Source of the DNA: Obrimoposthia wandeli
Lineage: Eukaryota
Direction: 5' to 3'
DNA length: 64,000 nucleotides
Assembly (NCBI GenBank): GCA_977020255.1
Contig: CDROCS010003952.1
Coordinates: forward strand, 124,001-188,000
The notes beneath the pieces are model-generated. The model had not been told where the DNA came from, ran no database searches, and worked only from the letters and a program-made list of their open reading frames with translations. Below, piece after piece: positions 15,910 through 34,818 of the stretch; position 1 is the first letter of the stretch, and every line of letters begins with the position of its first letter. Both the position numbers and the translations under genes were made by a program.

Positions 15910-15928
15910 ATTGATAATCACTCTCATT
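15910..15928. promoter_or_regulatory. Fur box
   Basis: ATTGATAATCACTCTCATT matches 15 of 18 defined positions of AATGATAATnATTATCATT; one mismatch is the common ATTCTC variant. Confidence 0.75.
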
Positions 15929-15939
15929 CCCGTTAGTAT
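15911..15939 (+). promoter_or_regulatory. sigma70 promoter of the DUF1566 lipoprotein/tad run
   Basis: TTGATA-N17-TAGTAT, ending 68 bp before ATG 16008; the -35 and spacer are overlapped by the Fur box. Confidence 0.65.
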
Positions 15940-16007
15940 ATGCGAAAATTTATGTTTGACTATAGTTTTCATAAAGTTATTTACATTTCAATAAAAGGGA
16001 TAGGTAA

Positions 16008-19000
16008 ATGTTGTTAGGAGTAAATAAATCACTGCTCGCGTTCACAGTGATTTCAGGTTCGTTGTTAACGGGTTGTAATGAAGCAAGCCCAGATCAAAAA
16101 TCGACAAATCCGACACAAAAAGTCGTTAAACCAGATGCTCCAGTCGGACCTATCGTGAATGATGACCTTGATCAGTTTGGCTGGTCTTGGAGTCGTAATT
16201 TTAGTGATAAACAATTTTATGAAATCAAAATACCCAATCAACCCTGGTCGAACGTCAATGGTAATCCGCATCAACTGGTTGTTGATGGTGTTTATGCTGT
16301 TGGTGATATTCAAATTCGTGTAAAGGCAGACTCAAGTAGTAACCGAGCAGCGAGTGATGTACTGGTTAATGCCGCTATTTATACCGCTGATTCAGCGATA
16401 AAACGCCCTAAATCGCCTACTAATCCAGTTCAGAATGACAGCTTGAATACCTTTGGTTGGGACCTCGTTACTGGTTTTAACGATGTTAGCGAGTATGAAT
16501 ACTCACTGACTGGCGGTGTTGATTGGACAACTGTTGCTAGCAAACCTTTAAACGTTGGTGATGTTGATATTGATGCTGGACATGTGCAAGTACGTGTTAA
16601 AGCAAATCCAGCAGTGGGTACATTAGCTGGTTCAATCTTAATTAGCTCACAAGCATTTACAGCTGGTGTGCCGGTTGTCATTGCCGCGCCAACATCGCCT
16701 GATATTGTTAACAAATACATCGGTTCCTACAATGAAGTTAAAACAAATGGTTTTAGTTGGGATTGGGTAACGAATAGTAATACTAAGGTTACTTACGATG
16801 AACCTGAGTATTACGAATTTACCAATGATGGTGGAACAACCTGGCAGGCTGCGACGTACAAGCCTCAGCATATTGGTCCTAAAGCTTATGATAAAACCCA
16901 AGTTGGTGTACGTATTAAGAAAAACGCAATCGCGAATCAGGTGAACCCTGTTGGCGAAATATTGTTTGCAACAGCAGCGAGCGAAAAGTTTTATGTTACA
17001 CGTGTAGTATCAATGAAAACCTGGAATCAGGCTCAAGATTTAACATCATCAGGCAACTGGTCTAAGGCGAAAGATGATGGCTGTTATATTGAATATGATG
17101 TTAATGGCGAAAATCCACAGTTTTGGGCTTATGCAGGCAAAAATTCTAGCGCGAATAAGGTGTCTGCATTATTAACTACAGAATTTTGTAATATACCAAA
17201 CTGGTCGTTACTCGACTCGACAGAAATGAAAGCTAAAACTTTAGTTGATTCGAGTTATATCTCAAGCACGTTTAGTCGCTATTTAATTACTAACTCTACA
17301 TCGTATGGTATTGCTTATTGGGCTGTTGAAAAAACGGGTGATGCTAAGATATGGAAGAAAATACAAGCGGGTAAGGAAATAACGAATGCAAGCGCGAAAG
17401 TAATTTTAAATTGGACACTACCAGATACAGCAACAATAGTAACAGAAAGTGCATCAACGGACGCTGATATCAAGGCATTAGTATCGTTACAAAATGGTAA
17501 CTGGCAAACGACCTCGACTGATTTGATTGCTGTTATTAATAAAATTGCAGCGTTAGCGGGTCAATCTTTGACGCCATTATTATCTGACGTGACAGCTGCG
17601 GAAGGCAAAGCGAAAGCGGTATTTGATTTACTTACGTTAGCGTTAGTTGAATACCAAAAAAAGTTCGACGTATTAACACTTTACTCAACTATGCTCGAAA
17701 GTGATAGCAGTATTGATAATGCGCTTAAAGCAACGATTAATGCCAATATCGCCTCGGCTAAAGTAGCATTTATTAATTTAACAGCATTACATACGACATT
17801 TAAATCAGCACTAAAAGTGACGCCAGCATTAACCGCATTGATTAAGTTAACAGATCAAAATACCAGCGCAAATACGGCTAAAGATGCATTAATAGCGGCC
17901 AATGATGGGGCTGATATTCATGCGAAGAGTTTGGATCTATTCGCTGCTGCAGCTGCAATAACTGATTTCATCAATGCAAATATTAAGCTCACTACCGACC
18001 TGAATAAGGCCATTAATGAATTGCCGACAGTAAATAATAGCGGATTAATCTCAGCGCTAGACAAATTGTTAATTATGTTTAGCAATTTACCAATCGCTGC
18101 AGATGTTAAAGCGTTAGACGATCACGCGTTAGCTGGATTGAAACGAGCAGCAGATGCAGGTTATAAAGCCCTTGCTGCGGATGCTGTAATCGGTACTCAC
18201 TTTGCTAAATTAGACATCAATGGTGATTATTTACCAAGTACCACGACGTATGCGCAAGGTTGGCGCTGTGTGATGGATAACCGCGATCCTATTCGTAAAC
18301 GTATTTGGACATTACTTAAAGACGGACTACCAAATGGTGCAGATGATTTGGCATTTGATGCTTCAGGTGCTGGTATTGCAAGTGTGATGGGCGTTGGTGG
18401 TTTAGTTGAATCGACAAAAATAGCACAACTATGTGGACGTAATAACTGGTCATTACCAAGTAAAAAACAGCTAATTTCATTGGAAACAGGCGTGATTAAG
18501 AGTTATGCAACAATCGATGTTGACGTATTCCCTAATCACCTTGCTTTTAAGCCAGAATATGACATCAATGATTGGCTATCCGGTGCTTTACCTGCAACAA
18601 AATTTTGGTATTGGACTGCTGAAAAACGTAGCAGTGAACAGATAACTTATCATTATAAAACAGCTAATAACGATTCATCAACAGGCTCTGAATCAACACA
18701 GGGTGATGAAGATGAAGTGGTTCTTGGGCGCTTAGTCAGTGAAATTGAATTGTCATACCAATTACTCGATAGTGCGGGTGTTGAAACGAGTAATGTTGAT
18801 GATGCTGTATGCGCTTATCAGCCGGAAACAAAGAAAACGTGGCAATTATTTGATACAGCTGATTTAGCGAAAAGAGCAAAATACTACGGTAACACAAGCG
18901 CTGATGCCGATACTGTATTAGCTGAAGTGGCACGTATTAATAACGTTCGTCTGTGTAATAAAAATAATTGGCAAGTACCTAGCTTAGCTGAATTAGAGTT

Positions 19001-19205
19001 ATTAGCACCTGTAGATCGCGTGGTGTTCCGTAACAGCAATGTTGAAAAATCGAGTACAACGCTTTGTTATGTTAGTGCTGATGCGCGGAATAGTAGTCAG
19101 AAGTGCTACAACATGAGTACTGATAAGACTTCTGATGTTGGTAGAATCAAGAATCCTTGGGGTTCGAGGATGTGGTATGTTTATCGTTTAATTACGTCTG
19201 ATTAA
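16008..19205 (+). CDS. Large outer-membrane lipoprotein adhesin: 3 beta-sandwich repeats, helical stalk, DUF1566 (Lcl/CLec-like) domains
   Basis: Lipobox LLTGC; three ~85-aa repeats (FGW...YE...W...QVRVKA); DUF1566-like motifs FCNIPNWSL, LCGRNNWSLPSKKQL, LCNKNNWQVPSLAEL; 8 non-lipobox Cys. Confidence 0.8.
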   Translation: MLLGVNKSLLAFTVISGSLLTGCNEASPDQKSTNPTQKVVKPDAPVGPIVNDDLDQFGWSWSRNFSDKQFYEIKIPNQPWSNVNGNPHQLVVDGVYAVGDIQIRVKADSSSNRAASDVLVNAAIYTADSAIKRPKSPTNPVQNDSLNTFGWDLVTGFNDVSEYEYSLTGGVDWTTVASKPLNVGDVDIDAGHVQVRVKANPAVGTLAGSILISSQAFTAGVPVVIAAPTSPDIVNKYIGSYNEVKTNGFSWDWVTNSNTKVTYDEPEYYEFTNDGGTTWQAATYKPQHIGPKAYDKTQVGVRIKKNAIANQVNPVGEILFATAASEKFYVTRVVSMKTWNQAQDLTSSGNWSKAKDDGCYIEYDVNGENPQFWAYAGKNSSANKVSALLTTEFCNIPNWSLLDSTEMKAKTLVDSSYISSTFSRYLITNSTSYGIAYWAVEKTGDAKIWKKIQAGKEITNASAKVILNWTLPDTATIVTESASTDADIKALVSLQNGNWQTTSTDLIAVINKIAALAGQSLTPLLSDVTAAEGKAKAVFDLLTLALVEYQKKFDVLTLYSTMLESDSSIDNALKATINANIASAKVAFINLTALHTTFKSALKVTPALTALIKLTDQNTSANTAKDALIAANDGADIHAKSLDLFAAAAAITDFINANIKLTTDLNKAINELPTVNNSGLISALDKLLIMFSNLPIAADVKALDDHALAGLKRAADAGYKALAADAVIGTHFAKLDINGDYLPSTTTYAQGWRCVMDNRDPIRKRIWTLLKDGLPNGADDLAFDASGAGIASVMGVGGLVESTKIAQLCGRNNWSLPSKKQLISLETGVIKSYATIDVDVFPNHLAFKPEYDINDWLSGALPATKFWYWTAEKRSSEQITYHYKTANNDSSTGSESTQGDEDEVVLGRLVSEIELSYQLLDSAGVETSNVDDAVCAYQPETKKTWQLFDTADLAKRAKYYGNTSADADTVLAEVARINNVRLCNKNNWQVPSLAELELLAPVDRVVFRNSNVEKSSTTLCYVSADARNSSQKCYNMSTDKTSDVGRIKNPWGSRMWYVYRLITSD

Positions 19206-19230
19206 TTCGGTATTTACCTGTTTATTATAA

Positions 19231-19254
19231 GGCAGTTAATGGAGATTAACTGCC
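19231..19254. other. Perfect hairpin between the lipoprotein gene and flp, no U-tract
   Basis: GGCAGTTAAT-GGAG-ATTAACTGCC followed by AAAACA. Confidence 0.7.
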
Positions 19255-19289
19255 AAAACACTCAACAATAACAATAATAGAGATGAAAA

Positions 19290-19469: not shown

Positions 19470-19524
19470 TAAACATTAACTCAGATAATATACGGTTTCG
19501 GCCGTATTAATAGAAGTAACAATT

Positions 19525-20391
19525 ATGCATGCAAAACGTTTAGTTTATCTGTCTGTTTGTACGTCTTTACTTGGGTTGATTTGGCTATTTTTCAGCTTGT
19601 CAGCACCAGTGAAAAGCACGTCTAAACAGGATCTGGTTAAGAATTATGAAGTACTTGTTACCACGCAGGATATCACTATTGGTCGTCCTTATAGTGCCTC
19701 GTTATTTGCCTGGAAAACGGTAAATGAACAGGATGTTAGTTCCCGTATTGATTTTATTGATAAAGCCACATTTTTAATCTCGACATTAAAAAATACCGTG
19801 GCTGCGGATGATTTTGTCGCAGGACAAATATTAAGCCCGTCAGATTTTTTGAAACCTGAACAAGGTGGCTTTTTGTCAGTCATGCTACGTCCCAGTTATC
19901 GCGCAGTTTCAGTACCTGTTGATCAAGTAACGGCTAACTCTGGCTTAATTGGTCCTGGAGATCATGTTGATGTATTACTGCTGGCATCAAAAGAGCAAGA
20001 ACTTCGCTCTCGTGGTAATGAAACCCAAAGTTTATACGTTAAAACTATCGCACAGAACGTCCGAGTGTTGGCATTTAATGACGCCTTACAGCTTACGCGT
20101 TATATGGAAAAGCAAAAAAACAATAAAGGCGTACTTCCAGATAACAGTACCGTGACGTTAGAGGTGTCACCGAGACAAGCAAATCAAATTACGTTAGCCA
20201 ATCAACTGGGTACATTGTCGATGGTCTTACGCAGTAAAAACAATTTAGATACAGATAATGCGGTAATCGCAGCTATCAATGTCGATGATATTTTACCTGC
20301 AATTAAACAAGTCCAACCGGATATTGGTTTAGTTGAATTTCGCGCTAAAGAAAAACGAGTGATGAGTAATGCAGGAAACGAAAATGATTAA
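19525..20391 (+). CDS. cpaB: Flp pilus assembly protein CpaB/RcpC
   Basis: N-terminal TM, SAF domain, YRAVSVPVDQVTANSGLIGPGDHVDVLL, TVTLEVSP. Confidence 0.92.
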   Translation: MHAKRLVYLSVCTSLLGLIWLFFSLSAPVKSTSKQDLVKNYEVLVTTQDITIGRPYSASLFAWKTVNEQDVSSRIDFIDKATFLISTLKNTVAADDFVAGQILSPSDFLKPEQGGFLSVMLRPSYRAVSVPVDQVTANSGLIGPGDHVDVLLLASKEQELRSRGNETQSLYVKTIAQNVRVLAFNDALQLTRYMEKQKNNKGVLPDNSTVTLEVSPRQANQITLANQLGTLSMVLRSKNNLDTDNAVIAAINVDDILPAIKQVQPDIGLVEFRAKEKRVMSNAGNEND

Positions 20392-21781
20392 ACAATTAGT
20401 GAGCGCATTGTCGTTATTACTACTGAGCACAGTATTACAAGCGCAGACTTTGGATGTGGTATTAAACAAAGCGCGATTAGTGGTGCTGCCAAGTACAGCC
20501 AAGTCTATTTTCATTGCGAGTAGTGGTATTGCCGATTACCAAACTTTAACTAATACCAAGATCATGGTGTTCGGTAAAAAAACAGGAAGTACATCTTTGT
20601 ATGTACTGGATGCTAAAGAAAACGTTATTTATTCAGCAACAGTGAAGGTTAATCATAATGTCACAGAGCTTAACGATCTCATTCATGATGAATTTCCTGA
20701 TGCATTATTTAACGCCGAATCAACCGCCGGTAAGTTGTTTTTAAAAGGGCAAGTTCCGACAGCCAGCATGGCAGAAAAGATAGTTCGTTTATCTGAAGGT
20801 TATGTCTCTGCGTTAGCAACATCAAGTGAGGTTCCACAAGGTGCTAGTGCGGAAGGGGGGGCAGCTGCTGCCGCTCCAGTCGCTAAAACGGATGACGATG
20901 AATTGATCAATCAATTACAAGTCACCATGCCAAATCAAGTTAATTTGCGTATTCGTATTGCCGAGGTTTCTCGTAAAGTGTCTAACAAACTGGGCATTAA
21001 ATGGGGTTCACAAGGTTTTGGTACTGGTACATTTGCTTTTTTAGATAATTACGGCGGCAAACTTGGTGGTATGAACCCTGCAGGTTGGGCTGATCTGTCG
21101 GTCATTGTTGATGCATTGGCAACTAACGGCATGATGTCGGTGCTCGCAGAACCTAATTTAACCGCGATGAGTGGTGAAGAAGCTTCGTTTCTTGTTGGTG
21201 GCGAGATCCCGCTACCTTTGGTCTATAACGACACTGCATCAGTTGAGTATAAACAGTTTGGTGTGAAGCTTGATTTTAAACCGACGGTATTAAGTGCTAA
21301 CCAAATTAGCCTGCAAGTATTTTCTGAAGTCAGCACTGTCTCTTCGGAAACAAGTGTGCAAATTGGCGGGCAGGGAGGCAGTTCTTCATTCCCTACGTTT
21401 GTGACGCGCCGCGCTGCGACGACGGTAGAACTGGCCAGTGGTCAAAGCTTTGCACTAGGTGGTTTATTACAATCAAAAGATATTGAGCAGTTACAAAAAA
21501 TGCCACTGTTGGGTGATATTCCAGTACTTGGTGCGCTATTCCGTTCAACCGAATTTCAACGTGAAGAAACGGAACTCATTATTATTGCGACGGCTTATTT
21601 AGTGCAACCGACTCGTTCTGACACATTCGCGTTGCCAACAGACGGTTTGATCCCGATGAGTGATGTTGAACGGTTATTAGCGTGGCCAATAGACAAACAA
21701 ACAACAAGTTCAACAGCAAATGAAGATCGTACTGACAATCGCCAACCGCGACTGCTTGGCGATAACGGATTTTATTACTGA
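20384..21781 (+). CDS. cpaC: Tad secretin CpaC/RcpA
   Basis: Signal peptide from ATG 20384, QVNLRIRIAEVSR, LAEPNLTAMSGEEASFLVGGEIP, KMPLLGDIPVLGALFRS. Confidence 0.95.
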   Translation: MIKQLVSALSLLLLSTVLQAQTLDVVLNKARLVVLPSTAKSIFIASSGIADYQTLTNTKIMVFGKKTGSTSLYVLDAKENVIYSATVKVNHNVTELNDLIHDEFPDALFNAESTAGKLFLKGQVPTASMAEKIVRLSEGYVSALATSSEVPQGASAEGGAAAAAPVAKTDDDELINQLQVTMPNQVNLRIRIAEVSRKVSNKLGIKWGSQGFGTGTFAFLDNYGGKLGGMNPAGWADLSVIVDALATNGMMSVLAEPNLTAMSGEEASFLVGGEIPLPLVYNDTASVEYKQFGVKLDFKPTVLSANQISLQVFSEVSTVSSETSVQIGGQGGSSSFPTFVTRRAATTVELASGQSFALGGLLQSKDIEQLQKMPLLGDIPVLGALFRSTEFQREETELIIIATAYLVQPTRSDTFALPTDGLIPMSDVERLLAWPIDKQTTSSTANEDRTDNRQPRLLGDNGFYY

Positions 21782-21788
21782 GGTAGTT

Positions 21789-22418
21789 ATGCGGATATTT
21801 TCGATATTAATAATGTGTGGTTTGTTGAGTGCCTGTGCAATTGATTCTGTACAGCGCCAACCAGAAGTTCAAGTAGAAGCAGTTACTCACAAAATAGCGT
21901 TACAACTGGATCAAAAGGGATTATCACAAAGTGATCAAGCCGCGTTGAGTGAATTTATTTATCAACGTGGTGATTCGTCAGCGTTGCGCATAAAAATAGC
22001 CACTTATAACAACAAAGGGGTGAGAGCTATACCTGCATTAACGGCATTATTAAAACAGGCTGGTGTGTATCCATCTCAGGTAACGAGCGAAGCGGGTGAA
22101 ACATCGACGGTAGCGGATGTCGCCTTATTCGTTGAATCTTATCGTAGCCTTGTACCGAATTGTGTGGCAGGGAAGCAGAAACACAGTGTGTTAAATGAAT
22201 TCAAATCGAGTTCTAATTTTGGTTGCGCCAATGCGAGTGCTTTAGCGCAAATGGTTGCAACACCAAGAGATCTTGCTGTTGGGCGTACGCTCGATGCAAC
22301 AGAGGGCCGTAAAGCTGTATCAAGAGTGGATACTTATTATCAGCCAACGACTAGCAACAGCGAACAAGCAGATAAAAATAACAGCAGTAGTATTTCGTCT
22401 AGCTTAGGAGGGCTGTAA
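21789..22418 (+). CDS. cpaD: Pilus lipoprotein CpaD/RcpB
   Basis: GAGGT RBS, lipobox LLSAC, PNC...NFGCANASALAQMVATPRDL. Confidence 0.85.
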   Translation: MRIFSILIMCGLLSACAIDSVQRQPEVQVEAVTHKIALQLDQKGLSQSDQAALSEFIYQRGDSSALRIKIATYNNKGVRAIPALTALLKQAGVYPSQVTSEAGETSTVADVALFVESYRSLVPNCVAGKQKHSVLNEFKSSSNFGCANASALAQMVATPRDLAVGRTLDATEGRKAVSRVDTYYQPTTSNSEQADKNNSSSISSSLGGL

Positions 22419-22420: not shown

Positions 22421-23239
22421 ATGCAAGCGTCTAATCCAATCGCGAATGATCATGTAAAGCGTCATAAGATCGCAGTCGTGAGTGCCAAAGGTGGCGCTGG
22501 TACAACCTCGTTAATCGCCAATATTGCGTGGGGTTTATCTCAATTGAGTCAGACCAGAGTCGCTTGTGCAGATCTTGATTTTTTGACAGGTGATTTAGAC
22601 TTACAATTCAGTGTACAAGCGAACAACGCATTGCTAGAAATGCTGCAATTTCCAGACCGTTTAGAGCCTGTTATCTATCAACGTAGCGGGGTTAAAGTTA
22701 ATGATGATTTATACCTATTTACCGGTTATGCATCTGGTTTTGAACTGCATTTTTGGCCTGATATTACAAGTATGGATAAAGTGTCTGATTTTTGCCTTGA
22801 ACAAGCAAACCATGTGATTTGGGATATTCCTGCATTCTGTTTACGCGATAAAGTGGGCTTTGAAACGTTAAATCGCAGTGATATTCGCGTGGTGATTGTT
22901 GAACCTACATTGGCATCTATCCGCAGTACCAACCAGCTATTGACGAAATTAGCATCTACAGGCGCATTAGATACTCGCACGATAGTGGTACTTAATCACA
23001 CCAAACCCGAAGCACAATCTTTAATTACGGCTAATGATGTTGCGGCGACTTTGGACCGTAAATTGGATGTTGAAATCCCGTATTCTCCAGAGGATATGCG
23101 GACAGGTAATGCGCTCGGTTTATTGGCTATTAATCAAAAAAGTCGCAGTGCAAAAGCATTGAAAAAATTGGTTGCTGTTATTAGTGGTGAATCAAAAGTA
23201 TCAAAGCCTAGTGTGTTTAGCTGGCGTAAGGGGGCGTAA
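22421..23239 (+). CDS. tadZ: MinD-like pilus localisation protein TadZ/CpaE (no receiver domain)
   Basis: Deviant Walker A SAKGGAGTTS, ADLDFLTGD, VEPTLASIR; position in the locus. Confidence 0.85.
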   Translation: MQASNPIANDHVKRHKIAVVSAKGGAGTTSLIANIAWGLSQLSQTRVACADLDFLTGDLDLQFSVQANNALLEMLQFPDRLEPVIYQRSGVKVNDDLYLFTGYASGFELHFWPDITSMDKVSDFCLEQANHVIWDIPAFCLRDKVGFETLNRSDIRVVIVEPTLASIRSTNQLLTKLASTGALDTRTIVVLNHTKPEAQSLITANDVAATLDRKLDVEIPYSPEDMRTGNALGLLAINQKSRSAKALKKLVAVISGESKVSKPSVFSWRKGA

Positions 23240-24594
23240 TGTTTGGAACTAATACAGTCACACCGACGCCAACAGAGTCATTACTGACATTATCTGTATC
23301 CACAGATGTTGCGGACGTAACACCTAGCAATAATGTTGAAGAGCAACGTTTTCGTGTTATCCAACAAGAGATAATGGCGATTATTGCTCCTGCTGTCGTT
23401 GTCACGCTGACGCCTGAAGAACTTGAAGTTCGCACGTTTGAAGCCGTCGGTGATATTGCTGCTCGTCAGCAATTTCCAATTGGGGGGACTGAGCAGCGTA
23501 ATATCAGCCAGCGCCTTGTTGATGAAATGTTGGGGTTGGGGCCTTTACAGGTGTTAATGGATGATCCTGAGATAACAGACATCATGGTTAATGGTCATAC
23601 CGAGGTATTCGTTGAATATCGCGGTAAGGTCAAGCGCGCTGATGTTCGCTTTCGCGATGAAGAACATGTATTGAATTTAGCGCGCCGAATAGTAAGCCGT
23701 ATCGGTCGCCGTGTGGATGAAACAACGCCGATGGTTGATGCGCGTTTACCCAATGGCAGCCGTGTGAATGTGCTTATTCCACCATTGGCATTAAATGGTA
23801 CGTGTATTTCTATCCGTAAATTTAATGAGCAAAAACATAGCTTGCAGCAACTTGCTGCGCTCGGGGCTATGTCGTCTGATATGGCGGATGTGTTGAATAT
23901 TATTGCTCGTTCTCGAGTTAATGTATTGATTTCGGGTGGTACAGGTGCCGGTAAAACGACATTACTGAATGCGTTGTCGTTTGGTATTTCCCCCGACGAA
24001 CGCATCATTACGATTGAAGATGCTGCAGAATTAAAGTTACAGCAACCGCACGTGGTGAGTATTGAGACAAGGCCTGCCAATGTCGAAGGCGCTGCAGCCA
24101 TTGGTCAGCGAGAATTGTTACGTAATGCATTACGGATGCGTCCTGACCGAATTATTTTAGGTGAAGTCCGTGGCGCTGAAGCGTTTGATATGATGCAGGC
24201 AATGAATACTGGTCATGATGGTTCTATGTCAACGCTGCATGCTAATACGCCGCACGATGCGTTAATCCGTTTAGAGAACATGTTGTTAATGGCAGAGGTT
24301 AATTTACCTGTGTCTGCTTTACGCCGCCAAATCGCTAGCACTTTGGATGTGGTTGTACAAGTGGAACGTATGCGAGACGGTAAACGTCGAGTGGTAAATA
24401 TTACCGAAGTAGTCGGCCTCGAAGGCGATCAATACCTTACTCATGATTTGTTCCATTTTGATTATCAGAAAATGGACGTTAATGGCGATCTTGTTGGTGA
24501 GTTTCTATCCACGAAAATCTTGCCGCGTTTTAATGAAAAGGCGCGTTACTACCAACTTGAATCTCAGTTGAAACAAGCCATGGGAGTGCGATGA
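23239..24594 (+). CDS. tadA: Pilus assembly ATPase TadA/CpaF
   Basis: [48 protein letters not shown]. Confidence 0.97.
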
Positions 24595-25526
24595 TGTCAG
24601 TCATGGTGACAGGCCTGTTGTTATTGATTATGTTTGTGTTTAGTAGTTATAAAGCCTTACAGCATCAGCGTCAACGACAGGTATTAAAGCGTCGGTTAAG
24701 CTCGATATCAGCAGTGAATAGTACAGATAGTAAAGCGACGTCAACTTTATTTCATTGGGCGCAAAAAACGAGCCCTTTATTACAATATGGTCACGATCTG
24801 AAAGCGCGTATCGACGCCTTATTTAACCGTAAAGCTAAGCGTGTTCTACAATTATTGTTAGCAATTTTGGCTGTTGTTGTCTGGTTTACGTTATCTTTTT
24901 TTACGCCATTAATGAGAATGATGATTATTGCGATTATCATATTATCGGTATTGGCTGTGAGCTATTGGATCATGACTGTGCGTCAACATAGTGAATTTAA
25001 TGCTGGTTTCACGCAAGTATTAGGTCAAATGTCACGGGCTGTGTCGGCAGGTATTTCAGTGCCGCAAGCTATCGCTCAAATAGCGGATTATCAACAAGGG
25101 ATATTGGGTCGCGAGTTTGGTTTGATCCGCGATAAATTAGAGATTGGTATAGGCCTAAAGCAAGCGCTAAACCAGGCCCGTATTCGTTTGCCTTATGTGA
25201 GTTTTCATTTCTTTAGTGTGGCATTAATTTTGAACGAAGAGAATGGTGGTCAGCTGCGAGAGGTATTACATAGTTTGAGTCGAACAGTGCATGACAACTC
25301 CGCTATTAAGATGAAGATCAGAAGTTTAACTGCCGAACCGCGCATGACGGCCGCAATTTTAGCAAGCTTGCCGGTCGTCCTTATCTCGGTGATGTTCTTT
25401 AAAAATCCCAGTGCATTTATTACGTTAACTCAAAACCCTAGCGGGCATTTAGTCTTAGGTTATGTGTTTACCAGTATGGCGCTTGGTTTTGCGATTATTC
25501 ATTTGTTAACGAAGGTGAGAGCTTAA
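24591..25526 (+). CDS. tadB: Inner-membrane platform protein TadB
   Basis: T2SS-F-like MSRAVSAGISVPQA, EENGGQL, SLTAEPRMTA. Confidence 0.92.
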   Translation: MMSVMVTGLLLLIMFVFSSYKALQHQRQRQVLKRRLSSISAVNSTDSKATSTLFHWAQKTSPLLQYGHDLKARIDALFNRKAKRVLQLLLAILAVVVWFTLSFFTPLMRMMIIAIIILSVLAVSYWIMTVRQHSEFNAGFTQVLGQMSRAVSAGISVPQAIAQIADYQQGILGREFGLIRDKLEIGIGLKQALNQARIRLPYVSFHFFSVALILNEENGGQLREVLHSLSRTVHDNSAIKMKIRSLTAEPRMTAAILASLPVVLISVMFFKNPSAFITLTQNPSGHLVLGYVFTSMALGFAIIHLLTKVRA

Positions 25527-26416
25527 TGTCTTTATCTTTATGGATTGCCGTTACTTTGCTTATTACTGGCGCGGTCATGGCACTGTTATTTAGTGCGCCA
25601 GCACAGCGCCGTGAGCAGTTATTAAAGCGACTGCTATTAGTATCGGCATCGGCACCGCAGAAATACCGACCTCTTAGTCTCAGTAAATCATCGTCAAAAA
25701 TTGGCTGGTTACGCCGTTTAACTGTCGCGCCTGATATTAGCGCATTATTGGTTAAAGCTGGGTTTCATGGTTCAAGAGCAAGCGCTACGTTTTTATTGTG
25801 CAAATTAAGCTTAATGCTGATTAGTGCGATGGCGTGGCAATGGTATGTCGATTTTGATACCGATAAATTCGTCATGGCTAAGACTATTATCTTTGCTATT
25901 TCTGGCGGACTTGTTGCTGAACAATGGTTGAAATGGCGCGCTCGCACGGTTAATTACCGTATTGCGCTAGCGTTGCCTGATGCGCTTGATTTAATGGTTA
26001 TCTGTGTCGAATCAGGTTTAACCTTGGAAGCCGTATTTCAACGTGTTGGCCGTGAAATGGCTGCAGTTACTCCTGAGTTATCACGTGAATGGTTAATCAC
26101 TGAAGCGGAGTTACGTTTATTGGACTCTCGTATTACGGCATTAAATAACTTGGCAGAGAGAACGGGTTTAGTGGAAGTTGAAAACATGGTTATCGCCTTA
26201 TCTCAAGCTGAAAAATATGGCAGTAAGATAGCGCCAACGATGCGTTTAATCGCCAGTGACAGCCGTCAATATCAATATTTACGTCTAGAAGAGAGAGTCG
26301 GTAAGATCCCCGCGAAAATGTCATTACCTGTGGTGGTATTAATCATGCTGCCTGTAGTCGTCCTGATTGTTTCACCAACGATCATCGCATTATTAGATAG
26401 CCTTGGAGGTATGTGA
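25526..26416 (+). CDS. tadC: Inner-membrane platform protein TadC
   Basis: LPDALDLMVICVESGL, QAEKYGS, KMSLPVVVLIMLP. Confidence 0.93.
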   Translation: MSLSLWIAVTLLITGAVMALLFSAPAQRREQLLKRLLLVSASAPQKYRPLSLSKSSSKIGWLRRLTVAPDISALLVKAGFHGSRASATFLLCKLSLMLISAMAWQWYVDFDTDKFVMAKTIIFAISGGLVAEQWLKWRARTVNYRIALALPDALDLMVICVESGLTLEAVFQRVGREMAAVTPELSREWLITEAELRLLDSRITALNNLAERTGLVEVENMVIALSQAEKYGSKIAPTMRLIASDSRQYQYLRLEERVGKIPAKMSLPVVVLIMLPVVVLIVSPTIIALLDSLGGM

Positions 26417-27222
26417 TGAAAAAGTCACTGGTGAAAGTGTTTATTATGTTTGGCTTGCTCATGTTATCTGGCTGTAGCACTAATCAATTAAGCCAAACCG
26501 AAGAAATGCACTCGGATCGTGACCTAGCAAAGTTGGCACTTGATAGTGGCCGACCAGACAGTGCGATCTCTATTTATCGTAAGCAACTTGATTTACAACC
26601 AAACGATACCGAGCTGTTGCTAGCGATAGGGACTGCTTACAACCAAATGTCTGAATTTGATTTAGCACTGCATTATCTTAATCAAGCACAAGCGTTGATG
26701 TTAACTGAGACTAATAAGTCATCTGTGATACATGGTCAAATATTACGTGAAAGAGGTAATGCACTGCAAGGTTTAGGTAACTTAGAGGGCGCTATTTTAG
26801 ATTTAAAAAAAGCGGCTGAATTATTACCTAAAGATGCTAAAGCATTAAACAGTTTAGGTATTAATTACGCCTTGTTTAAGGACTACCCTCAAGCAAGAAT
26901 CGCGTTCACAGGCGCGCTTGCTAATGCACCTGACAATTTAGAATACCGTAATAATTTAGCACTCGCTTGGATTTTAGATGGGCAACCACAGCAAGGTATC
27001 GATGTGCTTTATTCACATTACTTACGTGGTAGTTCGACGTCTAAAAGCCGTCAGAATTTGGCCTTGGCCTTTGCGATGAAGGGCGATGTCGAAGCTGCAG
27101 AAACCATTGCAAAACAAGATCTAACGAAAGCTGAATTAGAAAATAACCTTGCTTATTATCGGCAGCTTTATCAAGGCCTGTTACAGCAAGAACCGTTATT
27201 GACAGAGCAGATTAAACAATGA
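26413..27222 (+). CDS. tadD: TPR lipoprotein pilotin TadD
   Basis: Lipobox LSGC, TPR repeats, RNNLALAW, RQNLALA. Confidence 0.9.
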   Translation: MMKKSLVKVFIMFGLLMLSGCSTNQLSQTEEMHSDRDLAKLALDSGRPDSAISIYRKQLDLQPNDTELLLAIGTAYNQMSEFDLALHYLNQAQALMLTETNKSSVIHGQILRERGNALQGLGNLEGAILDLKKAAELLPKDAKALNSLGINYALFKDYPQARIAFTGALANAPDNLEYRNNLALAWILDGQPQQGIDVLYSHYLRGSSTSKSRQNLALAFAMKGDVEAAETIAKQDLTKAELENNLAYYRQLYQGLLQQEPLLTEQIKQ

Positions 27223-27689
27223 GTCTGTCTAACATGAGAAATCGTCAGCGAGGTGGCGTTAGTATTGAATTTGCAGTGACAATTGTGCCATTTTTTGTAT
27301 TGCTGTTGGGATTGATCGAAATTAGCCGCTTTATGATGGTGAGCAGTATGGCTGATGTGGCCTTAGCTTCTGCAACGCGAGAGTTAGTGGTGGATAATTC
27401 GCGTGAAGATTTAACCGCCAAATTACAATTAACCTTGTCAGAGCTGCAGTTACCATTATTGAATGGTAACGAGATTACTGTTCAAGCACATTATTTTACC
27501 AGTTTGGTGGCATTAGAAAATGATGATTTTGTAGGCACCTTTGGTGGAGAGAATTTCGCTGAATTTACCTTGTTGTATCCGTATGAAGCGCTATTTGTTG
27601 CAGGTTTTTCTGATAGCTTTGAGCGTTTATCAAACTTTAAACGCACGACGTTAGTGACTGTAGAGCGGAGTGCTAATTATGCGAACTAA
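27219..27689 (+). CDS. tadE: Pseudopilin TadE
   Basis: QRG|GVSIEF class III signal followed by a hydrophobic helix. Confidence 0.88.
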   Translation: MSLSNMRNRQRGGVSIEFAVTIVPFFVLLLGLIEISRFMMVSSMADVALASATRELVVDNSREDLTAKLQLTLSELQLPLLNGNEITVQAHYFTSLVALENDDFVGTFGGENFAEFTLLYPYEALFVAGFSDSFERLSNFKRTTLVTVERSANYAN

Positions 27690-28290
27690 ACGCAGCCCGT
27701 ATACAGCTCAACGCGGTAGTAGTGTCATCGAGTTCCCTATCATTACATTAGTGATGGTTATCCTTGTTTTATTTGTCATAAAGATAAATCAAGGGATCAA
27801 CCACAAGAACCAACTTAATGCGTTAGCTTATTCACTGACATCAATTGTGGCTTGTGCTGAATGTGATAATGGCATGAATAAGCCAGCTTCAAGTCCTGTT
27901 ACTCCAGGTGTCATTCCGGACCTAGTAGCGGATTCATTATTCCAAGTTGCACAGCGGCATTTCAACGATTTAATTGTTGAATCGTCAGCTGATATTGGGC
28001 TTCAAGTTGAAAGGCTGGTCTTTGATCCTTCAACCAAAAACTCAAAACCGTACTCTTTAAATAGAGGGGTAGAATGTGACGCAGCTACGTCATTATCATC
28101 ATTAGAGGATTTATCACCCTTAGGGAAAAGGTCGGGCATAAATGCTGGACAGCAGGCTGAATTATTTCAAGTCACCCTGTGTATTAAGGGTGTCGAGAGC
28201 TTTGGTAATGGTATTACCCCTTTATTTATACGTAACTTCAGTGACCGTTATTATCAAAGCTCGGCGTTATTAATAGGGCGTAAAATATGA
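27670..28290 (+). CDS. tadF: Pseudopilin TadF
   Basis: QRG|SSVIEF class III signal; 4 Cys. Confidence 0.85.
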   Translation: MLIMRTKRSPYTAQRGSSVIEFPIITLVMVILVLFVIKINQGINHKNQLNALAYSLTSIVACAECDNGMNKPASSPVTPGVIPDLVADSLFQVAQRHFNDLIVESSADIGLQVERLVFDPSTKNSKPYSLNRGVECDAATSLSSLEDLSPLGKRSGINAGQQAELFQVTLCIKGVESFGNGITPLFIRNFSDRYYQSSALLIGRKI

Positions 28291-29483
28291 TGTCCATATC
28301 ACGTCAACGTGGCGCAATAGCACTCACATTCACGTTTATGTTACCCGCGATTATGAGCTTATTAGCCATGACGGTGTTTTTTTCGATGTACAGCCAAGTT
28401 GTGATTAGAACGGGTCAAGCTGCTGAAGCCGCAGGGCTTGCCTGCGGGTATCAGCAAAGTGATGAGCGAACCGTTATTGACGGTATTTTAGATTATTACC
28501 GCCCTAATTTTGTGCTGCCTGCGCTTGGTAATAGTGTCAGCTTGGATGGTGATAAGGGTTGTAATATATCAGTGCAATATCATTTTAAACCGGCAATGAA
28601 CAAATTACTGCCAGTTGAAGTTAACAGTTCAAGCTTAGTTACATCAAACAGCGGTTCTAGCGCCAAATTAGTGGAGAATGTTGCGAATGTTATTCAAAAG
28701 CCTACCGATTTTTCACTCGTTCTTGATATTTCAGGTTCGATGGGATCGGATTTACCTGAATTAAAAAGAATCATTACCGATGTGATAAGTGACATTGACC
28801 CAAGTAATAATCAAGTTCGTTTTTCTATTGTGCCTTTTCAAACCGGAGTGGGGGTGATGGCAGCACCTTGGCTTTCGAGCTCTAAAGCAAGTCCTAAGTG
28901 TGTTGATGGCTTGGCTTATCGCAATGGGAATTTCGATGCAGATAAAACCGTGAAATTGTTAAATTCGCCATCCAAAAATCTTGATTTTAAAGAGGTTACA
29001 CCAGGACCTTGGTTAGACCGTTGCAGTAGTACGGCATTTATTTTACCGCTGACCAACGATCTTAATAGCGTAATTGATTATGTCAACAAGCTCAGTACCA
29101 GTGGTACTACCGCGTCTTACCAAGGCTTTATTTGGGGTGTGAGAACGCTTACTGAACAATGGCAGCAGGAATGGAAGATTACCCCTGTGACATCTTCGTC
29201 ACTAACTCAACGATTAATTTTGTTTACCGATGGGTCTGATAACGGCGGTGGGCATTTTGATGACCTAATGAATGCGGGTTTATGTGACGAAATCCAACAA
29301 AACTTAAACATTGTAGTGAGTTTTATCGGTTTTGGTGTATCAGCTAATCGTATTAAGCAATTTCAACAATGCGCAGGCCGTCTTGGTGCGGTGTTTGACG
29401 CTAAAGATAGTCGCGATCTAGCCGGTTATTTTGAGAAGGCACTTAAGGTTGAATCCAAGCCTAGGCTCGTATTGGGTCAGTAG
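28287..29483 (+). CDS. tadG: TadG with vWA domain
   Basis: QRG|AIAL N-terminus, MIDAS motif VLDISGSM, GTT, LFTDG; 6 Cys. Confidence 0.9.
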   Translation: MMSISRQRGAIALTFTFMLPAIMSLLAMTVFFSMYSQVVIRTGQAAEAAGLACGYQQSDERTVIDGILDYYRPNFVLPALGNSVSLDGDKGCNISVQYHFKPAMNKLLPVEVNSSSLVTSNSGSSAKLVENVANVIQKPTDFSLVLDISGSMGSDLPELKRIITDVISDIDPSNNQVRFSIVPFQTGVGVMAAPWLSSSKASPKCVDGLAYRNGNFDADKTVKLLNSPSKNLDFKEVTPGPWLDRCSSTAFILPLTNDLNSVIDYVNKLSTSGTTASYQGFIWGVRTLTEQWQQEWKITPVTSSSLTQRLILFTDGSDNGGGHFDDLMNAGLCDEIQQNLNIVVSFIGFGVSANRIKQFQQCAGRLGAVFDAKDSRDLAGYFEKALKVESKPRLVLGQ

Positions 29484-29543
29484 CGTTTTAGTTTTAAGCT
29501 TTTAGTTTTTGAGAAGTTTTTATTTATTATATTAGAGGTAGTT

Positions 29544-30008
29544 ATGTTTAAAAAGTGGCTTGTGGTGTTCACATTATTATTGTCTAGCCAAGCACATGCT
29601 TATCAACAAGGCGAGATGCTTTCTGCGTCCGCACTGCAGAAGTTAGGTTTAGATCCAAATCGCGTCACTCTGATTGATTTCTTTGCCGAGTGGTGTGTGT
29701 CTTGCCGAGCTGAGTTACCAGAAGTGAATGAGTTTGTCCCTGCATTAAGCTCATTAGGGGTTGATGTTGTTGGTGTTGATGTCGATGAGGACATTGCTGT
29801 CGGTATTGCATTTCAACAATCTCTCGGGCTCAATTTCAGGGTGGTTAATGACGATAAACAAACCCTAGTTGATGACTTTCAACCTATTGGTATGCCTGCA
29901 TTGTATTACGTTTATCAAGGGCAAGTGTTGAAGATCCGTTATGGTGCGATTAACCATATCGGTGACGTCATTTTGAGTGACTTGAAAGCGATGGGATTAA
30001 ATCAATGA
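29544..30008 (+). CDS. Periplasmic TlpA-family thiol:disulfide oxidoreductase
   Basis: Signal peptide ending AHA, DFFAEWCVSC, cis-Pro motif GMPA. Confidence 0.9.
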   Translation: MFKKWLVVFTLLLSSQAHAYQQGEMLSASALQKLGLDPNRVTLIDFFAEWCVSCRAELPEVNEFVPALSSLGVDVVGVDVDEDIAVGIAFQQSLGLNFRVVNDDKQTLVDDFQPIGMPALYYVYQGQVLKIRYGAINHIGDVILSDLKAMGLNQ

Positions 30009-30658: not shown

Positions 30659-30777
30659 ATATACCCATCACTGGCTGTAAATTTAGCTTGTTTTATCGTG
30701 AGTGGTTTATAAGGAATAGCTGATAAGTCACTGTTGATAAAACACTGTTGATAAAATAATGTTGTAACTAATTAAAG

Positions 30778-31995
30778 ATGAATAAAATAATGAATATAAA
30801 ATTACCGTTAACGATACTTGGTCTTGTTGCAGGTTCAGCATCTGCAGCCGATCACATTTCTATCCATCATATGAGCTTTGAAGAATACGGCGATAAAGTT
30901 AAAGCCGGTGATAATGTGTTGTCATTAGAAAAAAATATTGGTTTAGATTGGACTATCACTGCTGAATTGGGCTACGACACTGTTTCTGGCGCTTCTCCAG
31001 CTTGGGTCTCGACGACACCATCATCTGGTTCACATGACCAAATTACCCAAGATGCACAAAATATGACCTCGGAAGTGATCCGAGCAGGTTATGACCCTTA
31101 TCGTGGCAATTATGAAATACGTCCTGTTGAGCTAGAAGATACCCGTTATTCTGCGTCAACTAATGTGACCTACCGTGATAAAGACCGTGATGAATGGACA
31201 GCCGGGGTAAACTATTCGCAAGAGGAAGATTACAAGAGTATGGGCGCCAATGCGAAAGCGTTGTTCTATACCGACAATACTAAAAACCGTTCGTTTAGTG
31301 TTGGTGGCTCGATATTGACGGATCAGACATTAGCATTCCAAGAATATCAAAATGGTGGCAATGCCCAAGAATGGCAAGACATTTTCACATCGAGTATGGA
31401 AGTGGGTATGTCACAAGTATTCACACCTAATTTATATGCCATTTTCACGGCTTATGGCGGTTATAAAAGTGGTTATTTAAGTAATCATTATTTGACCGTA
31501 CTACGTGAAGTAGATATTGATGGTGACGGTTCAATTGGTGATGATGAGGTGTTTTTAGGACAAGATTCACGTCCTGATACTCGTATTTCTGGTGGCGTAA
31601 ACTTGCAAACATTCTACAGCGTTAGCGACAGCGTTGTTGTTCGGCCTCGTTATAAATTCTTTACCGATGACTGGGGCGTAACGTCACATCAACTCGGCGG
31701 TAAAATGAGTGTCAAAGTAACTGATTGGTTAACGTTTGCGCCAGGTTATTTTTGGTACACCCAACAAGGGGCGAACTTCTTTATTGATCCTAAAGCACAA
31801 GATCCTACTTTTGCATCAACAGGTTACGCCACTTCAGATATTCGCTTAGGTGATTTTAATGCTAATGCCTATGAACTGGGGGCAAGCATTAAGTTATCGT
31901 CTAAATGGCGTATGAATGCCTTGGCTGCTTATTATGAACAGAGTAATGGTTATGCGAGTAATTGGTGGGCAGTGGGAGTTACCTATGACTACTAA
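30778..31995 (+). CDS. DUF3570 outer-membrane beta-barrel protein
   Basis: Sec signal (GSASA), DTVSGAS, EEDYKS, GYLSNHY, RPDTR, DDWGVTSH, SDIRL blocks; C-terminal beta-signal VGVTYDY. Confidence 0.85.
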   Translation: MNKIMNIKLPLTILGLVAGSASAADHISIHHMSFEEYGDKVKAGDNVLSLEKNIGLDWTITAELGYDTVSGASPAWVSTTPSSGSHDQITQDAQNMTSEVIRAGYDPYRGNYEIRPVELEDTRYSASTNVTYRDKDRDEWTAGVNYSQEEDYKSMGANAKALFYTDNTKNRSFSVGGSILTDQTLAFQEYQNGGNAQEWQDIFTSSMEVGMSQVFTPNLYAIFTAYGGYKSGYLSNHYLTVLREVDIDGDGSIGDDEVFLGQDSRPDTRISGGVNLQTFYSVSDSVVVRPRYKFFTDDWGVTSHQLGGKMSVKVTDWLTFAPGYFWYTQQGANFFIDPKAQDPTFASTGYATSDIRLGDFNANAYELGASIKLSSKWRMNALAAYYEQSNGYASNWWAVGVTYDY

Positions 31996-32872
31996 CCAAG
32001 CCTATACGCACCATTTTATGGCAATGACTGTACCTTGTGAAGTGACTTTAATTACGATTGATGCTGCGTCTAATGCGGCGCAGCTTGCGCTTGATATTGA
32101 AGCTAATACCAAACGATTGGAAGCCAAGTTTAACTTCTATTCGGATACGTCCATGCTCACTACCTTGATTAATCAGCGAGAGGGCAAGCGAGTAATGGTC
32201 GATGCCGAAACTCGCGATATTTTAACTAAGGTGCGCGATTACAGTGCGTTAACGCAGGGTATTTTTGATATTACCGTTGGCACAGTGAAAGCATTATTAC
32301 AGCGCAGTACGTTAACACGAGAGCAAATCTATCAAGATGCGGCGCCTTATATGGGGCTGAGCGCCTGGGAGATTGAAGATGATTACTTACTCTTACATTT
32401 TCCACTTACTCAGTTAGACCTTGGTGGTGTGATTAAAGAAGTCGCGGTTGATCAAGCGCTGGCGATGGTATCAGCAGCGAGTAGTGGTGTACTGATTAAC
32501 TTTGGTGGTGATATTCGTGTTGCAGGTAAAAAATCTGATGGTGATGATTTCATTGTCGGGGTGGTTAATCCCCATGAGCAAACACAAGCGTTGTTTGCCT
32601 TACCGTTACATAATCAAGCGCTGACCACGTCGGCACATTATGCAAGGCGACAGCAGTTTTCTGATCATGACAGCTCGCACATACTAGCTTCGCAGGATAC
32701 CCATAAACAGGTTATCTCGGTAACCGTTGTCGCCAATACAGCTTTACAAGCTGGGATCATGAGTACCGCATTAACAATTAACCCTCGCTTAGCCGTTCCT
32801 GAAGAAATTGGTTTTGCACTTGTAGATGAACAATTAAATGTTCACCAAAATACGGATTTTTTATTACTATGA
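31985..32872 (+). CDS. apbE: FAD:protein FMN transferase, no signal peptide visible
   Basis: FMAMTV, FDITVGT, LDLGGVIKE, INFGGDI, TTSAHYAR, SHIL motifs; ATG 31985 overlaps the DUF3570 end. Confidence 0.88.
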   Translation: MTTNQAYTHHFMAMTVPCEVTLITIDAASNAAQLALDIEANTKRLEAKFNFYSDTSMLTTLINQREGKRVMVDAETRDILTKVRDYSALTQGIFDITVGTVKALLQRSTLTREQIYQDAAPYMGLSAWEIEDDYLLLHFPLTQLDLGGVIKEVAVDQALAMVSAASSGVLINFGGDIRVAGKKSDGDDFIVGVVNPHEQTQALFALPLHNQALTTSAHYARRQQFSDHDSSHILASQDTHKQVISVTVVANTALQAGIMSTALTINPRLAVPEEIGFALVDEQLNVHQNTDFLLL

Positions 32873-34818
32873 AGTCATTTTTAAAAACATCACTACAGAC
32901 AAATAAGGCTGTAGTGCAGTGCATTATTTTCCTGATGTTACTCATGAGTATCTGCGTATCAACCTGGGCGCAAGCGAGCAGTAATGCACAGGCCAAATTT
33001 TTAACGGTAAACGAGGCTTTTCCATTTACATCTCACATTTCACGATCGAGTGATGGCGATAAACTGGTGCTTAACTTTGCGACTCAAGCGGGTTATTACC
33101 TTTACCATAAACGATTTTCGTTTAAAGCTATTAATGATGAGCTTGATGGCGATATTAGTTTAGCTAAGCCGCAATTTTCGGTGGTCGCAGAGCAGAAACA
33201 GGATCCTAACTTTGGCTTGGTTAAAGTTTATCATCAAGCGTTAACTGTCACGTTACCTTTCACAGGTAGCGGTAATGTGAAGGTTAGTTATCAGGGCTGT
33301 GCCGATAGTGGTTTATGTTATTTACCACAACGTAAAATAATTAATGTGAGTGCGATTGATTCTAATGGCATTGATGTTAACGATGCTAAGGGAGTGAATG
33401 AAAATAAGGTTCCTGCTGTTATAACTGCTGCGGTAAAAGCACAAACAACAGCAGCAAGCAGTTCATTGGTTGCGGCTGTTAATGATACGGCGAATGACAG
33501 TCAAGGTTTGGCTAGCATGCTCGCTGGTACCGGGCGTGCTCAAGCATTATTGTTATTCTTCGTACTCGGTTTAGGGCTTGCATTTACGCCTTGTGTGTTG
33601 CCGATGATCCCGATTTTATCGAGCATTATTGGTGGTCAAGGTGACGGCATGACGGGTTGGAAAGGTTTTTATATTTCGTTAGCGTATGTGCTTGGCATGG
33701 CATCGAGCTATGCCATGATTGGCGTGCTGATGGCGACAGTGGGTCAAGGTATTAATATCCAAGCGGCGATGCAACAGACTTGGTTATTAGTGATTTTCGC
33801 AGGACTGTTTGTATTACTCGCTTTAGCTATGTTTGGGGCTTATGAACTGCAATTACCGTCTCGATTACAGGTGGCGTTAAATAACCAATCACAAAGATTA
33901 TCTGGCGGGAAGGTATTCACCGTGTTCATGATGGGCGCTATTTCAGCTTTAGTCGTATCGCCATGTGTCTCCGCACCTTTGGCTGGGGCGTTACTTTATG
34001 TATCGACTACGCAAGACTGGTTGTTCGGTGGCGGGGTATTATTTGTAATGGCGTTAGGCATGGGCGTACCGCTAGTTATTATTGGTACATCGGGCGGAAA
34101 ATTATTACCGCGCAGTGGTCCTTGGATGATCCGTGTTAAGCAAGGGTTTGGCGTTATGCTATTGGCTATCGCGATATTATTGATTAGCCGGTTTGCGGCA
34201 CCATCGGTGACACTCGGATTATGGGCGCTGTTGATTATCAGCTGTGCGATGTACATTCATAGTATTACTGATATACAAGTAAGTCGATTGTGGTTGCGTC
34301 ACGTGGTGGTGTTCGTGTCCTTGGTTTATGGTGCAATGCTAATGATTGGCGTGGTGACAGGGGCGGATGATATGGCTGACCCGCTGCAGCATATCACCCA
34401 ACGTGGTGTGATGAATAAAGGTACCGAGCAAGGTTCACAACCGTTATTTATGAAAACAGCGTCGGTAACTAAGATTGAAACTGCAATTAATAACTTACCT
34501 GCACTTAAAGCGGTGACTATGGTGGATCTGTACGCAGACTGGTGTACATCATGCAAAGTGATGGATAAGCAGGTATTTTCGCATGCAGACGTGGTCGCTA
34601 AAATGACAGGCATTAATGCAATGAAGTTTGATATTACCGACAATTCAACAGCGCAGTCAGATTGGATGGCGAAAGCGCAGTTATTTGGTCCACCAAGTAT
34701 GCTGTTCTTTGATGCCGATGGTCAGGAGTTGCAACAATTACGCGTTGTTGGAGAAATGGATAAACAGCAGTTCTTGGCGCATCTGGAACTGGTTGTGGGC
34801 ACTGTACCTGTGAGCTAG
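32869..34818 (+). CDS. dsbD: Thiol:disulfide interchange protein DsbD (alpha-beta-gamma)
   Basis: All three Cys pairs intact: QGCADSGLCY; FTPCVLPM and SPCVSAPL; YADWCTSC. Confidence 0.96.
   Translation: MKSFLKTSLQTNKAVVQCIIFLMLLMSICVSTWAQASSNAQAKFLTVNEAFPFTSHISRSSDGDKLVLNFATQAGYYLYHKRFSFKAINDELDGDISLAKPQFSVVAEQKQDPNFGLVKVYHQALTVTLPFTGSGNVKVSYQGCADSGLCYLPQRKIINVSAIDSNGIDVNDAKGVNENKVPAVITAAVKAQTTAASSSLVAAVNDTANDSQGLASMLAGTGRAQALLLFFVLGLGLAFTPCVLPMIPILSSIIGGQGDGMTGWKGFYISLAYVLGMASSYAMIGVLMATVGQGINIQAAMQQTWLLVIFAGLFVLLALAMFGAYELQLPSRLQVALNNQSQRLSGGKVFTVFMMGAISALVVSPCVSAPLAGALLYVSTTQDWLFGGGVLFVMALGMGVPLVIIGTSGGKLLPRSGPWMIRVKQGFGVMLLAIAILLISRFAAPSVTLGLWALLIISCAMYIHSITDIQVSRLWLRHVVVFVSLVYGAMLMIGVVTGADDMADPLQHITQRGVMNKGTEQGSQPLFMKTASVTKIETAINNLPALKAVTMVDLYADWCTSCKVMDKQVFSHADVVAKMTGINAMKFDITDNSTAQSDWMAKAQLFGPPSMLFFDADGQELQQLRVVGEMDKQQFLAHLELVVGTVPVS

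Follow-up and report, generated by a model that had tools for sequence, protein, structure and literature searches.

Tad/Flp pilus loci are represented by tad of Aggregatibacter and cpa of Caulobacter, and in Shewanella the porin-cytochrome conduit MtrCAB carries electrons across the outer membrane to minerals. The present report concerns a 19-gene locus in which Tad pilus genes stand between the gene of a lipoprotein adhesin and a module of five redox genes, referred to here as the relay. The locus lies in a stretch of 64,000 nucleotides (the window), positions 124,001 to 188,000 of contig CDROCS010003952.1 in the assembly GCA_977020255.1 of Obrimoposthia wandeli. The closest described counterpart of the relay is the "DsbD system" of Meheust et al. 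(2021, eLife 10:e66878; PMC8238504), composed of DsbD, ApbE, DUF3570, a thioredoxin-like protein and DUF4266, for which 227 clusters with DsbD and 316 without it were recorded. In that study the DUF3570 protein of Chlorobium luteolum was shown experimentally to be flavinylated by its ApbE at two [S/T]GA[S/T] motifs, and a hybrid thiol/flavin chain fed with electrons by DsbD was proposed, its function being left open. Pili, Tad, Flp and secretins are not mentioned there. The same paper cites the flavin-based extracellular electron transfer system of Listeria (FmnB/PplA), in which an ApbE-type enzyme flavinylates a surface-facing protein that passes electrons outward, including to Fe(III).

The redox genes of the window are an instance of the published DsbD system. 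The same five families lie in one cluster, with a DsbD of three domains and six cysteines, an [S/T]GA[S/T] motif on DUF3570, an adjoining ApbE, a secreted thioredoxin and a DUF4266 protein with the CXC ending (here CGCN). It differs in that this gammaproteobacterial module is joined to a Tad locus and an adhesin, that DUF3570 possesses one SGAS motif where Chlorobium has two, and that DUF4266 carries a signal peptide and a long linker where the published-type Chlorobi form has a lipobox. Literature searches on Tad together with DsbD, ApbE, DUF3570 or DUF4266, and on Moritella tad, found no link. An earlier, sequence-only reading of the window had offered the whole as an undescribed system; this holds for the joining of the module to the Tad pilus and adhesin, and not for the redox module, which is already published.

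The pilus genes resemble those of Aggregatibacter and Caulobacter in the usual order of flp, rcpC/cpaB, secretin, cpaD, tadZABCD, tadE, tadF and tadG, and differ in lacking tadV, in having the lipoprotein adhesin gene first and in being followed by five redox genes after tadG. By analogy the locus may work like the Listeria system, although the latter is Gram-positive, receives its electrons from quinones by way of Ndh2 and EetAB, and lacks an outer-membrane barrel, DsbD and a pilus. With MtrCAB the locus would share an outer-membrane barrel as electron path; MtrCAB is built on many hemes, whereas the chain here would use thiols and flavin mononucleotide (FMN) only, and there is no sequence or family relation between the two.

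Conservation of the tad-relay junction

The best-supported statement is that the adhesin, a divergently encoded propeller lipoprotein, the Tad pilus and the relay constitute one selected, conserved 19-gene unit. Eighteen of the genes lie on the forward strand between 16008 and 34818, and in the open reading frame layout their junctions are overlaps or short gaps, the widest being 84 nt (19206-19289) and 119 nt (30659-30777). The order (adhesin, flp, cpaBCD, tadZABCDEFG, TlpA-like thioredoxin, DUF4266, DUF3570, apbE, dsbD) is that given in the sequence-only reading, and the layout and the Pfam and NCBIfam profile searches from which the assignments were made bear it out. Each family assignment was backed by these searches, TadZ falling below the Pfam cut-offs.

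Recurrence of the tad-DUF3570 linkage, which the sequence-only reading had proposed to survey, was examined in GTDB genomes, one for each species, by means of two peptide patterns taken from an alignment of DUF3570. This gave 54 loci, which were searched with 21 proteins of the window; the survey is biased, since the patterns were derived from the gammaproteobacterial clade. In every gammaproteobacterial locus with enough upstream DNA (46/46), tad genes lie directly upstream of the thioredoxin, DUF4266, DUF3570 and apbE genes, sharing their strand, and the gene order is the same throughout. These 46 loci comprise four from Moritella, five from Photobacterium, those of about 30 Vibrio species, and others from BD1-7, Marinobacterium, Colwellia, Pseudoalteromonas and an unclassified gammaproteobacterium (L045); another two (L037, L043) had too little sequence for a verdict. 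Across them identity to DUF3570 falls to 35% and that to TadG to about 25%. Shewanella violacea, which the pattern scan missed and which was reached through the divergent lipoprotein, possesses the whole 19-gene layout, and one metagenome contig carries the tad-relay linkage as well.

The gap between tadG and the thioredoxin gene measures 10-85 nt, the thioredoxin and DUF4266 genes overlap by 1-4 nt and apbE and dsbD by 4 nt. The adhesin gene, which had been put forward as part of the linkage and recurs with it, is the first gene of the operon in Moritella, Vibrio, Photobacterium and Shewanella; in Pseudoalteromonas denitrificans it is found downstream in convergent orientation, and in the metagenome contig downstream in the same direction. 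No dsbD gene is present in the clusters of BD1-7, Colwellia and Pseudoalteromonas. The junction of tadG with the relay is thus fixed while the adhesin gene, dsbD, tadV and a small barrel-like open reading frame have moved, been lost or been gained around it.

In the DUF3570 tree a single origin of the tad linkage suffices. The tree conflicts with organismal taxonomy in setting Moritella and Shewanella beside Photobacterium among the Vibrionaceae rows, and this suggests that the tad-relay block moves horizontally. Given this single origin and the likely horizontal movement of the block, the roughly fifty species do not represent fifty independent events.

The window carries DNA of a marine Moritella bacterium. 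The closest genome is that of Moritella dasanensis ArB 0140 (L001), with a DUF3570 protein 99% identical to that of the window. The identity between the two loci is a mosaic: DUF3570, apbE, dsbD and tadA are 98-99% identical, while the adhesin (70%), TadF (80%) and the DUF4266 linker (62%) are lower. Judged by these sequences, surface-facing or linker parts are diverging fast or being swapped.

The relay proteins

The CxxC of the TlpA/ResA-like thioredoxin is present in 17/17 relatives. DUF4266 closes with a domain ending GVGGGGCGCN that hardly varies between Chlorobi and Moritella. Its Chlorobi and Gallionellaceae versions are lipoproteins of 78 amino acids; proteins of the tad-linked clade have an ordinary signal peptide and a variable linker of low complexity, roughly 80-400 residues long.

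The sequence-only reading had taken DUF3570 for an outer-membrane protein of the flavinylated type, and modelling agrees with this: in the AlphaFold2 model (predicted local distance difference test, pLDDT, 89.8) it forms a closed all-beta barrel matching those of FadL, OmpG, BcsC and PelB, and so models as an outer-membrane beta-barrel. Its SGAS occupies residues 70-73. The D[ST]V[ST]GASP motif is universal among DUF3570 relatives, a second SGAS being found in Chlorobi only. By standard barrel topology Ser73 would lie late in the third strand, towards the outer half of the barrel.

The true start of apbE is at 31985, corresponding to M24 of the open reading frame, since in relatives the frame upstream contains stop codons; the start is called likewise in Shewanella. 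ApbE is therefore without a signal peptide. Its mature domain begins about 10 residues past Met24, and neither a signal peptide nor a lipobox is present in it or in the Shewanella and Chlorobi relatives. The cysteines of DsbD are at 144/150, 242, 366 and 559/562.

In the Colwellia and Pseudoalteromonas clusters that lack dsbD, apbE is followed by a conserved open reading frame of 237 amino acids (L044 12144-12857; also L041, L042, L046 and L047), which has no family match, a signal peptide and a C-terminal Phe as in small outer-membrane barrels.

Adhesin and divergent lipoprotein

The adhesin consists of N-terminal repeats, an Ala-rich coiled coil and C-terminal Lcl_C (formerly DUF1566) domains, and homologues stand at the head of the same locus in Moritella, Photobacterium, Vibrio and Shewanella. 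In these genera and in Pseudoalteromonas the gene of the divergent lipoprotein is arranged head-to-head with that of the adhesin. The lipoprotein has no Pfam or NCBIfam match. Homologues were found in Moritella, Photobacterium, Shewanella and Vibrio, and the gene in the same position in V. europaeus specifies a protein 31% identical to it. Its AlphaFold2 model (pLDDT 72.8) shows a helical N-domain, a beta-propeller matching WD40/YVTN propellers, and a poly-Asp loop. The loop (residues about 266-285) arises from a run of GAT codons at 14930-14990; the Asp run is kept in all homologues, columns D270-D273 being invariant. From its sequence it may be a cation-binding loop.

A likeness to E. coli YncE, an iron-regulated periplasmic beta-propeller, lies in the propeller itself, one homologue being named "YncE family" by NCBI, and in the position of both genes behind Fur-type boxes. 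The divergent lipoprotein differs from YncE in being twice as large and lipidated, in possessing an extra helical domain and the poly-Asp loop, and in matching no NCBIfam or Pfam family.

Promoter region and transcription

The adhesin gene is preceded by a predicted sigma-70-like promoter whose -35 hexamer is overlapped by a Fur-like box (Table 1). The box agrees with the 7-1-7 pattern at 12/14 positions and with the classic box at 14/19. With up to two mismatches the 7-1-7 pattern has three matches in the window against 0.81 expected, of which this is the sole intergenic one. Taken alone the box is marginal, since 3.7% of shuffles of the same 201-nt spacer equal its classic score. It gains weight from conservation. 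When the intergenic spacers of four taxa from three genera are compared, nothing but the Fur-like block is conserved, and in 8/8 taxa examined a box stands 73-98 nt ahead of the start codon of the adhesin gene with 14-16 of 19 positions matching (this window, Photobacterium and, by a hand count on the sequence, Shewanella violacea, 14/19 each; Moritella sp. 24 and the adhesin box of P. denitrificans, 15/19 each; three Vibrio species, 16/19). Fur control of the adhesin/propeller pair is accordingly a well supported prediction from these sequences.

A simple terminator scan found none in any gap of the 18-gene run, in agreement with the sequence-only reading, which had seen no obvious intrinsic terminator. 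A hairpin without a U-tract does stand between the adhesin gene and flp (Table 1) and qualifies that view.

RNA contigs from four runs were inspected for the locus of V. coralliilyticus. The metatranscriptome contigs, of low depth, give similar coverage from tadG to dsbD and bridge the thioredoxin/DUF4266 and DUF4266/DUF3570 junctions; none bridges tadG and the thioredoxin gene. One culture run gave a 15-kb contig, possibly DNA. A paper on Fur of V. splendidus and a salt transcriptome of V. brasiliensis contained no useful mention of the locus.

Pilus genes and neighbouring features

TadA, TadB/TadC, CpaC, CpaB, CpaD and TadD have Pfam matches above the cut-offs. The start of cpaD is probably at 21789, just before the lipobox, whose Cys is residue 39 of the open reading frame. 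No Peptidase_A24 domain, as expected of a prepilin peptidase TadV/CpaA, was found among the locus genes or the other open reading frames of the window that were scanned, and the enzyme may be encoded elsewhere in the genome. The Moritella, Vibrio, Photobacterium and Shewanella versions of the locus are likewise without tadV; in P. denitrificans (L062 4781-5104) a gene for a short Peptidase_A24 prepilin peptidase of 107 amino acids follows flp.

Convergent to dsbD, two adjacent genes for dynamin-like/DUF697 GTPases occupy 34913-37553 on the reverse strand. The pair is found in the same place in 3/4 other Moritella loci (L001, L002, L004) and was not seen in other genera. A small open reading frame at 47907-48284 matches Imm51, a family of immunity proteins of polymorphic toxin systems. 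No Rfam families and no meaningful repeats were found.

Table 1. Features of the locus, numbered from the first nucleotide of the window
Feature	Position	Strand	Remarks
Divergent lipoprotein, 684 aa	13752-15806	-	lipobox LAGC
Sigma-70-like promoter, predicted	15911-15939	+	TTGATA-17-TAGTAT; overlapped by Fur-like box
Fur-like box TGATAATCACTCTCA	15912-15926 as 7-1-7; 15913-15931 as 19-mer	+	overlaps -35 hexamer
Lipoprotein adhesin, 1065 aa	16008-19205	+	lipobox LTGC; Pfam Lcl_C (formerly DUF1566)
Hairpin, 10 bp, without U-tract	19231-19254	+	between adhesin gene and flp
flp prepilin, 59 aa	19290-19469	+	processing motif G/AAAIEY; Pfam Flp_Fap 31.2 bits (cut-off 32.2)
cpaB/rcpC	19525-20391	+	Pfam RcpC, 105 bits
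cpaC/rcpA secretin	20369-21781	+	Pfam Secretin and T2SS-T3SS_pil_N
cpaD lipoprotein	21789-22418 (frame opens 21720)	+	Pfam Pilus_CpaD
tadZ-like ParA/MinD ATPase	22421-23239	+	weak ParA/CbiA matches below cut-offs; same position in all relatives
tadA secretion ATPase	23239-24594	+	Pfam T2SSE, 219 bits
tadB	24591-25526	+	Pfam T2SSF
tadC	25526-26416	+	Pfam T2SSF
tadD TPR lipoprotein	26413-27222	+	TPR families; lipobox LSGC
tadE minor pilin	27219-27689	+	Pfam TadE
tadF minor pilin	27670-28290	+	Pfam TadF
tadG, VWA protein	28287-29483	+	Pfam VWA
Periplasmic TlpA/ResA-like thioredoxin	29544-30008	+	signal peptide; WCVSC
DUF4266 protein, 217 aa	30005-30658	+	61.7 bits; signal peptide, Pro/Val-rich linker, C-terminal domain ending GGGGCGCN
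DUF3570	30778-31995	+	PF12094, 268 bits; one flavinylation motif DTVSGAS, residues 67-73, codons 30976-30996
apbE FMN transferase	31985-32872 (frame opens 31916)	+	PF02424, 139 bits; overlaps DUF3570 end
dsbD, three domains	32869-34818	+	NCBIfam PRK00293, 560 bits (cut-off 330); Pfam DsbD_N, DsbD_TM, Thioredoxin

Proposed function and alternatives

The reading to which we lean, tentatively and as a possibility, is that a thiol-to-flavin chain delivers electrons to the outer membrane at the site of attachment, with Fe(III) as the likeliest acceptor. Under iron scarcity Fur would release the adhesin promoter, and read-through, partly checked by the hairpin before flp, would also yield the pilus and the relay. 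DsbD would move electrons from cytoplasmic thioredoxin to the periplasmic WCVSC thioredoxin, and the latter would reduce the C-terminal CGC of DUF4266. This protein would hand the electrons to FMN attached by ApbE to Ser73 of the DUF3570 barrel, which in turn would give them to an acceptor, most likely Fe(III), at the point of pilus- and adhesin-mediated attachment to a particle. Such a relay would suit an iron-starved cell because no carrier in it needs iron. What we infer is how electrons pass on from the thioredoxin, what accepts them and how iron governs the locus. The stronger version, an "attach and reduce" machine switched on by iron starvation, is unlikely in its entirety: in it the Tad pilus and an adhesin of lectin-like character would fasten the cell to a particle, and a heme-free conduit across the envelope, consisting only of Cys pairs and a single covalent flavin in an outer-membrane barrel, would reduce Fe(III), or some other oxidant bound to the surface, at the site of contact.

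Several observations weigh against this proposal. The sequence-only reading had one Fur-overlapped promoter controlling a single 18-gene transcript; the position of the box is conserved, as described above, but its control of the whole run is a weaker prediction. Terminator-like hairpins precede flp in Vibrio relatives at the same place as the hairpin of the window. Between the adhesin gene and flp, a canonical terminator occurs in V. makurazakiensis; the site found there in V. ostreicida is terminator-like, and neither species has space for a promoter between this site and flp. In P. denitrificans the tad-redox genes have their own flp promoter, at which the best box is weak (12/19), and no Fur boxes were found in four internal gaps of the locus. 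On these sequences the Fur-like box appears tied to the adhesin promoter only, and control of the other 17 genes is not implied. No iron transporter was found in or beside the cluster in any taxon inspected, and a search for RNA runs of the genome of the window found none. In Chlorobi, the two loci that include 10 kb of upstream sequence carry the relay and no tad gene. The main point that the proposal must account for is an ApbE without a signal peptide that serves an exported barrel; flavinylation of DUF3570 before export is one possibility.

The alternative that survives best, itself rather doubtful, is that the relay serves the pilus or the adhesin, reducing or reshuffling disulfides in TadG, TadF, CpaD or the adhesin or switching the adhesive state by redox, with no outside substrate. 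The relay is joined specifically to tadG in all loci, DsbD-fed thioredoxins are established to serve dedicated periplasmic clients (CcmG, DsbC, TlpA), and the surface proteins are rich in cysteine, with eight residues in the mature adhesin, six in TadG, four in TadF and two in CpaD, as the sequence-only reading had counted them. TadF C136/C171 and TadG C205, C333 and C362 are conserved across the clade, and the CpaD pair C148/C169 is kept in 14/14 relatives. Tad systems generally assemble without such a module, however, the relay occurs without pili in Chlorobi, and disulfide isomerisation needs neither a flavinylated outer-membrane barrel nor a CGC protein; the CxxC of TadF, moreover, is limited to Moritella.

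It is improbable that the pilus and the relay are two independent modules without functional coupling, neighbours by descent that were brought together once in an ancestor and then distributed as one block by horizontal transfer. The single origin of the linkage in the DUF3570 tree and the placement of Moritella and Shewanella would fit block transfer, and the relay stands alone elsewhere (the Chlorobi loci; PMC8238504). The junction nevertheless survives at 35% (DUF3570) and about 25% (TadG) identity while its surroundings change, intervals of 10-29 nt, found in many taxa, point to a single transcript, and the tad-linked DUF4266 has a derived form of its own, with the long linker replacing the lipid anchor. 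Less probable still is a metal-handling device, in which the thioredoxin keeps the DUF4266 CGC reduced for metal binding (compare TlpA and the copper chaperone ScoI) and the barrel is a metal passage: the thioredoxin is TlpA-like (WCVSC), the vicinal CGC, which follows a run of Gly at the very end of the protein, does not vary between Chlorobi and Moritella, and the Fur-like box ties the locus to metal status, but no role is left for the flavinylation motif of the barrel or the dedicated ApbE, and no metal-binding family was detected with Pfam or NCBIfam.

Significance

The DsbD/ApbE/DUF3570 relay is present in hundreds of genomes, its flavinylation being known and its function having been left open. 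Its linkage to tad genes behind a Fur-type box gives it a concrete setting, namely surface attachment and possibly iron limitation. The carriers are about fifty marine species, including tractable Vibrio and pathogens of corals and shellfish, in which the task of the relay is open to assay. Should the relay indeed carry electrons to the outer face of the cell, the outer membrane would be crossed by a conduit lacking heme and iron-sulfur centres, and "attach and reduce", if true, would add to the porin-cytochrome complexes a second way, free of iron, of transferring electrons at the outer membrane.

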